A stretch of 64,000 nt of DNA. It comes from Blastocystis sp. Blastoise. Its lineage: Eukaryota; Protista; Bigyra: Opalinata. The stretch spans positions 186,001 to 250,000 of the forward strand of contig JBBPEB010000014.1 of the NCBI GenBank assembly GCA_039096225.1. The letters are read 5' to 3'. The notes under the pieces were generated by a model, which did not search any database, was not told where the DNA came from, and saw nothing but the letters and a program-made list of their open reading frames with translations. The first letter of the stretch is position 1, and every line of letters begins with the position of its first letter. The translations under genes and the position numbers were made by a program. Shown in pieces: positions 7,404 to 57,340 of the stretch.

Positions 7404-10400
7404 TTATTTCTTCATGGCATATGTATATATTTCCATGAGTGCTGTTTTCATATGTTCTTCTTCTTGTGTATTAATACCATCCATCACAAACATCATATTT
7501 GTCATATATGACTCTTTATTATATCCTTCTTCATCAATTATACTTAACAAATAATTCAATAATGACGCACTTCTCTATTTAGAGAAGATATATAGAAATA
7601 TATAATATGTGAAGAAATTATACATATACTATACTAAGTTTATATATATATGTATACTTCAGGATGTTCTCTATCGATATAGGGTATAGCGTCAATTGAT
7701 TTAATAGCTAAGAGAACACAAATGTCAGGAATAACAGAAACACCAATAGTAGTAGAGGTAACAGTGGATATTCCTTGTTGGGTAGTCAATTTAATACCAT
7801 GAACCAACTGACGATATTGTTTACGATCTAATAATCTGAACATGGGAGCTCCGATTTGATTCATATTTATATATATATCCATATATTGTTGTATATATAC
7901 AGGAGAAGTAGAAGTAGAATAGAAAGAAGAATAGAGAGAGGAAAGATAGGAGGCTTGATCTTTTGGAAGAGGTTTAAGAATAGCAGGTAATTGTTGGATA
8001 TTTGTGACATTCTTTGGTTCTTGACTATTCTATATATATATATATATATATATAGGGATTATAGAATAAATAGAATAAACTAATAATGTAAATATGTTAT
8101 AAATATAATAAATACTTGATAGAAGAAATAGTTTACAACCATTTGGAGATTATTTTTGATATATATATGAATACACTTGGTATAATATGCATATAATTCT
8201 ATATTTCTGGCTATAGCATCAAGAAACTTGACATATAATTGGAAATTCTTCCACCACTCCTCCATTTCTCCCGCGGTTTTCTTCATTTCCAAACGATAAT
8301 TAATATCTTTTCCTTGTTTTGCTTCGATAACTAATTTATTATATATCTCCATCTATATATATATATATATATATATATATATATATATAATAATAATAAG
8401 CATACATATTGGTTGCTAATAAAGGGGAGAGATAATTCTGAAAGAGGAGTGACGAGCTCAGCGTCATTCAAAGAAGGGTAAATCAATTAAAGATAATTAA
8501 ATATATAAATATAAATATATATATATATATGGATATATAAAGATCATTAAGTTGAGTTTCAATGTCAGTTTTTAGAGGGATGAAAGGAAGTGAAAGAGAC
8601 TTCTATATATAAACAAACATTAATAGTAAGTATACTAATAAATAATAAATATATAAATAATAAATAATAAATAATAAATATATAAATATATAAATAATAA
8701 ACATAAATAAAAAACATAAACATAATAATAAATGTAAATATATAATATACCTCACTTGATATATCTTTCTTGCCTTTTCGTTTCTAGAAATATAGAATAT
8801 TAAACATATATAATAATATAATAATAAGTATATATTAATATACAGGTTTTATATCTTCTTCTTCTTCCTCATTAACCTTTCTATATATATATATATATAC
8901 GAATATAAATATATATATATATGAATATACTGAATAGAGACTGGATGGAGAAGTAGATATTGTTTTACAGTATTGTCCTTTTCTTTCTATTTATGAATGA
9001 CATATATAATATACAATATACATATATATATACACAAAGAATATTAACGATATTCGTTATGATTTCGCTTCGAACAAGGTATATTTCTTGACAAGTAAAC
9101 GCGAAAGAATGACCGTCATATTCGCGGGAGATAGAAGGAATTTGCTGATAAACCGCGGTAATATCCTCATCAGTAAAGGATGAAGGGAAATAAGCACTTC
9201 CATCTAAATAATAACAATCATCTTCTCTAAGCATGTCATACATATAAGCCTCAAAGTCCTTTATGAAAGAAATAGTAGTAATACAACTGGATAACTCGAC
9301 CAGATCCTCACGGGGACAGTAATTTGATAAAAAGGCTTTCATATTCTTTATCTATAATAATAATAATAATAATAATAAGAATAATAATAAATAGAATAAA
9401 AATATATACTTGATATTGTTTAGCCATTGTATCTGGTAAATAGAAGTTCGATAAGAAGAAGGAAGCACATGTATTTGTCTACAATTAATATATATATATA
9501 TAAATATATATACTTTCAGTTCTTCATGAATGGTTGGAGTAAAAATAAGAGATGATTGTGTTCCATGGAGAATATTCTGTTTAATATCTTCTATTAGGAC
9601 ATCCGTTACAGTTGGAACAGAAATAGTATAACTAAGAATTGTTATATATATGTATATAGTGTCATATTTAGAAAGATATTAATAAAAAATAATAATAATA
9701 AAAATACATTATACAGTAATATATATATACCGAGATGCAATTGTTTGAATATTAGCGGGCTTTTCTTGAGCTTGGAGGGAACCAGAAATAAAACTGGAAT
9801 CATAAGCAAGAGACTTCTGGATATAGAACAGTGAATAATAATAAAATAATAATATTAATGAATAAGAATAATATACTTTTGGATAAATAACATTATCTCT
9901 TATTTCAATATCATTATATTTATTCATATAATTCACAAAATAAGTATGTATATAGATTAAAGAACATATGGTTATAAAGAATAAATTATAATATAATATA
10001 ATATAATATAATATAATATAATATAATATAATATAATATAATATAATATAATATAATATAATATAATATAATATAATATAATATAATATAATATAAAAAG
10101 ATATTTATGATTTGCATAGACATATTATAATTTGTAGCTATTTCACCAATAGATCTCTTTCCATTAAATAAAACATCATAATACACATCATCAAATACTT
10201 GATGTACATAACTATATTTTATAAATAAAAATTAAACAAGAAAGAGAAATACTCTAAAGAAAGGAGATCTTGACCAATAAAGAAGTATTTGGATTCAGAA
10301 CTTATTATTATCTTAATACATCTTTCAATAGAAACAACATCTACATCCAAAAACAACTATATACATAAAATCTCAGAAAATTAGATACATACTGTTAATT

Positions 10401-10657
10401 GATCAAGACTAATTCTACCATTAAAGTTATTCAATTCACTAATAATATCAGAACAGAGTTTCTCTTCAGAATAAACACTTTTACAAACGCTGTTTGTTCT
10501 AAAAACGAATAAGTCATTCATAAATACTAAAATACACAATAAGATGAGCTTCTGAAGATATGTTCAACTGATCAATCAAATCTAATATATCATTTTCTGT
10601 AAAAGAAGAAAGTAATGGCAATATGGAAGCCGTTTTTTGTTTGTTATTTTCTGACAT
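7404..10657 (-). CDS. UFL1: E3 UFM1-protein ligase 1 homolog (multi-exon, includes two AT-AC introns)
   Basis: Spliced protein FTENDILDLIDQL...YSEEKLCSDIISELNNFNGRISLDQLT-LFLDVDVVSIE...GQDLLSL...GKRSIGEIATNYNMS...CASFFLSNFYL follows the UFL1 winged-helix repeat pattern. A basic KRKGKK linker exon is present. Confidence 0.75.
8478..8536 (-). other. U12-type AT-AC intron (59 nt)
   Basis: 5' ATATCCAT, branch-like ATCTTTAAT, 3' ...TGATTTAC. Removal restores the frame NDLY|PSLNDAEL. Confidence 0.8.
9948..10104 (-). other. U12-type AT-AC intron (157 nt), mostly a (TATAT)n repeat
   Basis: 5' ATATCTTT, branch-like TTCTTTAAT, 3' ...CTATATAC. Removal restores MQII-N-TYFVNYMNKY. No GT-AG alternative was found. 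Confidence 0.75.
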
Positions 10658-55800: not shown

Positions 55801-57340
55801 GAATCCTCAGTCACTCTATCCTTTCCTTTCTAATAAAGACTTCTTTTTACCGCGGGAAATGGATAAAATTGATAATCGATGTATTTTCCCTTATGAAGGA
55901 GGCACGTTTATGTGTATATTCCCACGGGACAAAGTACAAAAACCAATTCCAAAATCTGTTCGAAGGGAAGAAGAAGAAAAAGGTATATATTATAATATTT
56001 GTTAATAATGAATGTTATTTAATATATATAATATTGTTATATAATAATATATATAATAATAATATATATAGATAAATGGATATTCTTAGAGGTTGTCGAT
56101 ACAGGGGTAGGCATCAGTTACCAAGATATGCACTCTCTATTCCAACCATATGTTCAGATCACTTCAGGGGAGCTTCAGAAGGGACGCGGAACGGGACTGG
56201 GGCTGGCCATTTCACGAAGTATTATTGAGCTACACGGAGGGTATATCTCGGTATTCTCACAACCAAATATTGTATAATATATATATATATATATATATAT
56301 ATTCTTATTATCATTCTCTTTTCTTGATCATTCCACTGTAATAATAATTATATTATTATTATAACAATAGTAATACTATTCTAATTATTTTATACCTCCC
56401 TAGGGAAGTCGTTTTTGTTTCTGGATTCCCTATTATTCAACCACGCCTCCCTCCCGCCCTACTGACAACGACATTCCCATCCCCCCCTCAGCGGCCCACA
56501 GTATCGAAGGCGTTCAGGTATGTATCGTTGAGGACAGCAAGAGTATCAGACTTATGATGAATCTATGCTTAAAACAAACCAAGTGCAAAATATCCTTATA
56601 TTATATTATATTTATATTCTTTATACTTCTCTATATTGTATTATAGTATATATTATTTTCACAAAATTAATAATATATATATGTATTTCTTTATTAATAT
56701 AAACAATACTCTGTGTTGATGGATATGACGCACTTGAGAAAATCCCGCGATTATGTCCAGATATAATTTTTATGGACTATGAAATGCCGGGAATGAATGG
56801 CGGGCAAGTGACACGTATTTTGAGAGAAAAAGGAATTCAAAGTCCAATTATTGGTCTTACAGGTATATATATTATAAGAGAATATATTTTATTTATTTAT
56901 TTATTTATTTATTGTTTGTTTATTTATTTATTTATTTATTTATTTATTTATTTATTTATTTATTTATTTATTTTTATTGTTATTTCTTTTATTATTTATT
57001 TATTTATTTATTTACTTACATATATATTAATAAACATATATAGGGAATGCATTGAAGGAACAAAAAGAGCAGTTTATGTCATCAGGTAGAGTGTTTAGTT
57101 ATTCTATGCTCTTTCTATTCCTTCATTCTATATATATATATATATACTTAGTTCATACTAACAACTTTATATTATGTCTTATTCTTAAATCTTTCTATTC
57201 AACATTATTCTACTATTATATATATATATAACTTATTTCAATTCTCTGTAGGACTGAATGCCATCTTAACGAAACCCGTGGATATTAATAAACTGAAAGA
57301 AACTATATACATATATACTCGTAATAAAATAAACACATAA
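46851..57340 (+). CDS. Hybrid sensor histidine kinase with multiple PAS-like repeats, HisKA, HATPase_c and receiver domain
   Basis: H box AYIFHEVRNSL; N box NFISNALKFT; G1 VVDTGVGI; F/G2 LFQPYVQ...GTGLGLAIS; receiver IVEDS...IIFMDYEMPGMNG...GLTG...TKP. Upstream PAS-like segments. The start is uncertain. Confidence 0.88.
52189..52361 (+). repeat. Coding (AAT)n poly-Asn tract in the histidine kinase
   Basis: In frame within ORF 51855-52952. Confidence 0.85.
56590..56702 (+). other. U12-type intron (113 nt) with AT-AA ends in the receiver domain
   Basis: 5' ATATCCTTA, branch-like TTTCTTTAT, 3' ...TAATATAA. This boundary restores KQTKCK|TILCVDGYDALE; the nearby AC dinucleotides do not. Confidence 0.7.

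Follow-up and report, generated by a model that had tools for sequence, protein, structure and literature searches.

Are AT-AC introns of the minor (U12-type) spliceosome being gained in Blastocystis sp. Blastoise? The question is raised by a 64,000-nucleotide stretch of contig JBBPEB010000014.1 (assembly GCA_039096225.1, positions 186,001 to 250,000), referred to here as the window. An earlier note on this DNA described six such introns in five unrelated genes, each with the same distance from branch site to 3' end, and proposed a lineage-specific expansion or de novo gain with a ruler-like choice of the 3' splice site. The paper on the tortoise-strain genome makes no mention of minor introns (PMC12129017).

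Six U12-type introns and their host genes

When the letters are extracted again, the six segments lie where the note had placed them, five on the minus strand and one on the plus strand:

8478-8536, minus strand: U12-type AT-AC intron, 59 nt, phase 0, in a 17-exon gene (about 7404-10657); banning the donor costs 11 log units
9948-10104, minus strand: U12-type AT-AC intron, 157 nt, phase 1, in the same 17-exon gene (about 7404-10657); donor ban costs 13 log units
21430-21520, minus strand: U12-type AT-AC intron, 91 nt, phase 0, in an EF-hand Na+/Ca2+ exchanger-like (NCL-type) gene; supported by homology
37097-37234, minus strand: U12-type AT-AC intron, 138 nt, phase 0, within the SET domain of a gene at about 36780-40093; donor ban costs 20 log units
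44062-44150, minus strand: U12-type AT-AC intron, 89 nt, phase 2, intron 1 of urocanate hydratase (gene about 41102-44209); supported by homology
56590-56702, plus strand: U12-type intron, AT-AA ends as assembled, 113 nt, phase 0, in the receiver domain of a hybrid histidine kinase; donor ban costs 10 log units

The intron starts (ATATCCAT, ATATCTTT, ATATCCCT and three times ATATCCTT), the ends (AC in five, AA in one) and the branch 9-mers are as the note gave them, and each 9-mer is followed by 8 nt. Phase 0 is indeed found in four of the six (0, 1, 0, 0, 2, 0 in coordinate order). Compared with the 5' site RTATCCTT, in which one C at +5 or +6 may be T, three introns match exactly, one reads ATATCTTT and two deviate at +7. 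The branch A is at -10 in all six, a short branch-to-3' distance of the U12 kind. Most of the intron at 9948-10104 is made up of a (TATAA)n array. All six spliced junctions are open across both flanking exons, and retention adds one to six stop codons each, so frame restoration holds for every intron.

The junctions were also examined with a self-trained, two-strand gene finder, for which the window and 200 kb from four other contigs served as training sequence and in which the major introns of Blastoise read GTATAT...TATATAG. With a general U12 consensus motif and a flat branch-distance prior, four of the six introns are called exactly. When the motif is loosened so as to admit variants seen in the window itself, all six donors are used, five of them with the exact end, and no GTATCC-type minor intron is found in the window, as the note had also reported. 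For five of the six, a ban on the donor carries a penalty of 10-20 log units; the exception, 21430-21520, is fixed by homology.

Homology searches of the spliced models were run one exon at a time. For the 17-exon gene, which carries two minor introns, these searches found no homologue. In the SET-domain gene, the exons beside 37097-37234 match PF00856 positions 2-28 and 42-79; a metagenome scan with the SET exon returned one distant intronless SET gene only, which is uninformative on intron position. In the kinase gene, the exon after 56590-56702 matches PF00072 positions 29-77 and an upstream exon matches PF02518. The predicted plus-strand gene here (46851-59103) is very long, with HATPase and receiver domains at its end, and this model is probably a fusion with a neighbour past about 57700. 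In the exchanger gene, the deposited model WA158_002014 (window positions 19194-22518, minus strand) skips the exon at 21364-21429 that follows the AT-AC intron, and a conserved transmembrane helix is thereby lost. Splicing of 21430-21520 restores the helix and gives a gap-free alignment to proteins of another Blastocystis and of oomycetes. The intron after the exon at 21364-21429 contains a 340-nt (ATA)n array. A further ATATCCTT candidate, at 41081 on the minus strand, was dropped because it is located past the urocanase stop codon.

Judged from sequence, the six are real U12-type introns, and they extend a published Blastocystis trait to a further strain.

Minor snRNA genes and branch-site pairing

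A genome search with Rfam models, one of the checks suggested by the earlier note, finds each of the minor snRNAs once: U6atac (63.8 bits), U11 (62.9 bits), U12 (46.8 bits) and U4atac (29.7 bits). The U12 and U4atac scores are below the Rfam cut-off, but the functional motifs of both are intact and the upstream box common to these genes is present. Each of the four minor snRNA genes has this box, CTTCTAATCA, at a distance of 57-64 nt upstream; it is likely a promoter element of snRNA genes. It also precedes the major U6 gene, at -95. A second U6atac match proved to be this major U6. The weak U4atac match is supported by its predicted duplex with U6atac, at -32.7 kcal/mol compared with -18.0 +/- 3.7 for shuffles. 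A tRNA gene (positions 2078-2149 of locus L005, minus strand) is located about 440 nt from U4atac, on the window's own contig and 35 kb before the window. Among proteins, zf-U11-48K has three matches in the genome, and this finger is also found in other proteins; for subtype 1 (ST1), all seven minor-spliceosome proteins have been reported (PMC5608401).

Pairing of U12 to the branch motif was checked as well. The canonical U12 sequence GUAAGGAA pairs with 6-8 of the 8 branch positions in each intron, with the A bulged and G-U pairs included. The G-U pairs fall at branch-site positions where this AT-rich genome carries T in place of C. Both the U12-type identity of the six introns and the presence of the minor snRNA genes are supported.

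Density, age and ends of the minor introns

In the window itself, the density given by the note (roughly 120-140 introns, about 4-5% minor) is right, as the gene finder counts six minor introns among 133 (4.5%). Extended to the whole lineage, this fraction is not supported. In an assembly of 33,340,088 bases (34 contigs), the unselected 200 kb from four other contigs contains two to four minor introns, depending on stringency, among 466 (0.4-0.9%; 95% interval for 4/466, 0.2-2.2%), where about 21 are expected at 4.5%. The estimate for the genome comes from 0.6% of its sequence and from a gene finder built for this analysis. Decoy motifs of equal composition receive 1-10 calls in the same 200 kb, and the finder is therefore likelier to overcall than to undercall.

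A strict pattern (ATATCCTT, TCYTTAAY, and AC within 2-14 nt) occurs 317 times genome-wide, compared with 71 for a reversed control whose composition is only roughly matched; the excess amounts to about 210 distinct sites and is 4.5-fold. Since the strict pattern recovers three of ten identified introns, the genome total may be near 700. A few hundred to about 700 minor sites among about 65,000-78,000 introns (extrapolated) correspond to 0.3-1%. About 15 near-identical AT-AC introns are dispersed on contigs C8, C13, C14, C16, C17, C20, C23, C26, C30 and C31. Here gene-family duplication multiplies minor introns, and counts are inflated accordingly.

It is thus improbable that AT-AC introns underwent a lineage-specific expansion in the tortoise clade, or are still being gained de novo there, up to several percent of all introns. 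The window is denser than the 200-kb sample (6/133 vs 4/466, Fisher p = 0.01), and the 3/10 recovery would allow a true total two to four times the strict count, both of which favour an expansion. However, a Physarum-type expansion would amount to several percent genome-wide, and the sample has 0.4-0.9% and the genome a few hundred sites; a pattern modelled on the five AT-AC introns of the window finds 369 matches compared with 310 for its control. At a fraction of 0.9-1%, the probability of six or more minor introns in 133 is about 0.002, which corresponds to about one window this dense among 521. Strict-pattern matches on contig 8 are also paired, 1-4 kb apart, and such pairing gives window counts a fatter tail. 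The window is very probably a chance cluster in the upper tail of the genome distribution, not a new expansion.

The age of the positions also speaks against gain. Two of the six positions can be traced, which leaves some room for an expansion at the other four (the kinase and the orphan gene are among these), but both traceable positions are occupied by introns in human-gut Blastocystis. The counterpart of 21430-21520 in subtype 1 JDR is a U12-type intron at the identical position and phase; it has 40 nt, an ATATCC start, the branch site CCCTTGAC and, as annotated, an AG end. The counterparts of 44062-44150, on three human-gut contigs (L028, L032 and L034), are GT-AG major introns of 31-32 nt at the matching codon and phase. 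By this comparison both positions are old within the genus and predate the split from the human-gut subtypes. Urocanase intron 1 appears to be an old site with a class switch, for which U12 to U2 would be the simplest direction. In ST1, 253 minor introns have been described, 77% of them AT-AC and 49% phase 0, with rapid turnover within the genus (PMC10639083). As the excess of AT-AC and of phase 0 has already been reported for the genus (PMC10639083), it is not new here. Whether the minor introns of Blastocystis were gained recently is a question that Larue and Roy did not settle (PMC10639083).

It is also quite unlikely, and slightly more so than an expansion, that some or all of the six are artefacts, either motifs that arose by chance in DNA with 74% AT or GT-AG introns with ends that the assembly misrepresents. 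The gene finder does use decoy motifs wherever the frame needs bridging, and four introns of the urocanase gene indicate that ends in this assembly can be altered:

43090-43172, minus strand: urocanase intron with TT-AT ends
42877-42923, minus strand: urocanase intron with GG-AA ends
42788-42831, minus strand: urocanase intron with GT-AA ends
42033-42133, minus strand: urocanase intron with GG-AG ends

All six deviant bases in these introns are identical to those found at the corresponding places of the spliced mRNA. Another Blastocystis, whose sequence covers three of the four sites, has plain GT-AG introns at all three. An intronless second copy as the source of the odd ends is out, since the gene is single copy. 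The odd ends are probably due to overwriting in the assembly, which would most simply have come from spliced reads during polishing; the published methods comprise polishing with Illumina DNA reads and a further short-read round (PMC12129017). Overwriting cannot account for the AC ends, however, since in each of the five AT-AC introns the upstream exon ends in a base other than C. Only 56590-56702 is open to this explanation: the exon before it ends in the same base as the intron, A, and an assembly artefact may lie behind its AT-AA end. Genuine AT-AA ends also exist, and in animals and plants they are the commonest non-canonical ends of U12 introns. Against artefacts stand, in addition, the two junctions fixed by homology and the 4.5-fold genome-wide excess of the strict pattern over its control. 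Non-canonical introns read from the Blastoise assembly (e.g., apparent GA-AG) can be false and should be distrusted.

A strict ruler, with the 3' splice site always exactly 8 nt past the branch 9-mer as in all six window introns, is hardly credible, because spacing is 6-12 nt genome-wide (mode 7-8, with 8 at about a quarter of the sites), the minor introns of the 200-kb sample have 8, 9, 9 and 10 nt, and the orthologous JDR intron has 6 nt as annotated. The tally was made by hand on the first 100 strict-pattern matches listed (about 86 sites, about one fifth of them chance) and gives about 5 sites at 6 nt, 22 at 7 nt, 23 at 8 nt, 11 at 9 nt and 9 at 10 nt, with 4 at 11 nt, 5 at 12 nt and about 10 others; spacings outside 7-10 nt span 4-6 and 11-16 nt. 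The commonest branch A position in the genome is -9 to -10, and for U12 introns an optimum branch distance of 11-13 nt has been reported (PMC3584512). Under the genome-wide spread, six identical spacings of 8 nt have a probability on the order of 1 in 1000, a coincidence that we put down only to the choice of the window after the fact.

Very probably, then, the six are ordinary minor-spliceosome introns, found in a Blastocystis lineage in which the U12 system was retained and seen in a window from the upper tail. In such a lineage, U11 would read the ATATCC/T 5' site and U12 would pair with a TTCYTTAAT-like branch site with its A bulged, as the computed pairing suggests. U4atac/U6atac and U5 would then catalyse splicing, with the 3' end at an AC (or AA) in a short permitted window about 8-14 nt past the branch A; this window is deduced from known U12 splicing and from the genome-wide spread of spacings. 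The genome would hold a few hundred minor introns, about 0.3-1% of all introns and nearly all AT-AN. Many would be old within the genus and would turn over by loss or by conversion to GT-AG major introns, and clustering within genes would help a window such as this one to reach the upper tail.

Scarcity of GT-AG minor introns and an altered U6atac box

Blastocystis subtype 1 is the closest known system (PMC5608401, PMC10639083). It has 346 minor introns among 35,412 in one count (PMC5608401), and like Blastoise it has about 1% minor introns that are dominated by AT-AC and show no phase-0 deficit, and all four snRNAs; at least one U12 intron position is common to both. Unlike ST1, where the median is 39 nt, Blastoise has window introns of 59-157 nt, and its branch sites are more T-rich. 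In ST1, 23% of the calls have ends other than AT-AC, whereas in Blastoise the number of GT-AG minor introns with a strong consensus is about what chance would give: the GT-AG version of the strict pattern is found 22 times genome-wide, compared with 18 for the control, and at most a couple of the candidates look real (C4:196066-196146 and C4:1372189-1372236). Such introns thus appear near absent in Blastoise, and this may be new.

The U12 introns of animals and plants share with those of Blastoise the 5' site, the branch site, the branch-binding sequence of U12, the short branch-to-3' distance, AT-AA as a non-canonical end and clustering within genes. They differ in that they are mostly GT-AG, depleted in phase 0 and below 0.5% of introns, with the branch A at 11-13 nt (mode 9-10 in Blastoise) and the U6atac box AAGGAGA in place of GCCGAGA. 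Physarum polycephalum also has more minor introns than usual and an altered consensus, but there a true massive gain dwarfs other cases, whereas Blastoise is near 1%.

The altered box is found in the following gene:

L002 1501-1617 (G000:C21:544821-544937), minus strand: U6atac, with GCCGAGA replacing AAGGAGA, 6.5 kb from the major U6 (L003)

The gene reads GAGCCGAGAGAAGG where the Rfam consensus has GAAAGGAGAGAAGG. With this box, only +4 and +5 of the 5' site (and the distal +8/+9) can pair. In the standard U6atac register, the GCC change would remove the pairing to +6 and +7 of the 5' site. Three of the six window introns deviate at +6/+7. In the human system, the AAGGAGA box has been described as perfectly conserved (PMC8283771). 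A tentative reading, which we lean somewhat against, is that the minor spliceosome of the tortoise strain is now almost AT-AN-only, its GT-AG minor introns having been lost or converted, its U6atac pairing to +6/+7 lost and these positions relaxed.

The expansion as first claimed would have been a second Physarum-like case, and this is not borne out. What the window adds is two more Blastocystis minor-intron positions long established in the genus, including one that has switched class, and a deposited gene model that breaks at the one minor intron checked (21430-21520). Two further leads are open to testing, namely that GT-AG minor introns are nearly absent and that the U6atac box is altered. 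If the AT-AN-only reading is true, this machine would be a natural test of how U6atac pairing and intron ends set subtype choice. It would also bear on why phase-0 minor introns are kept in Blastocystis, as AT-AC introns resist conversion.
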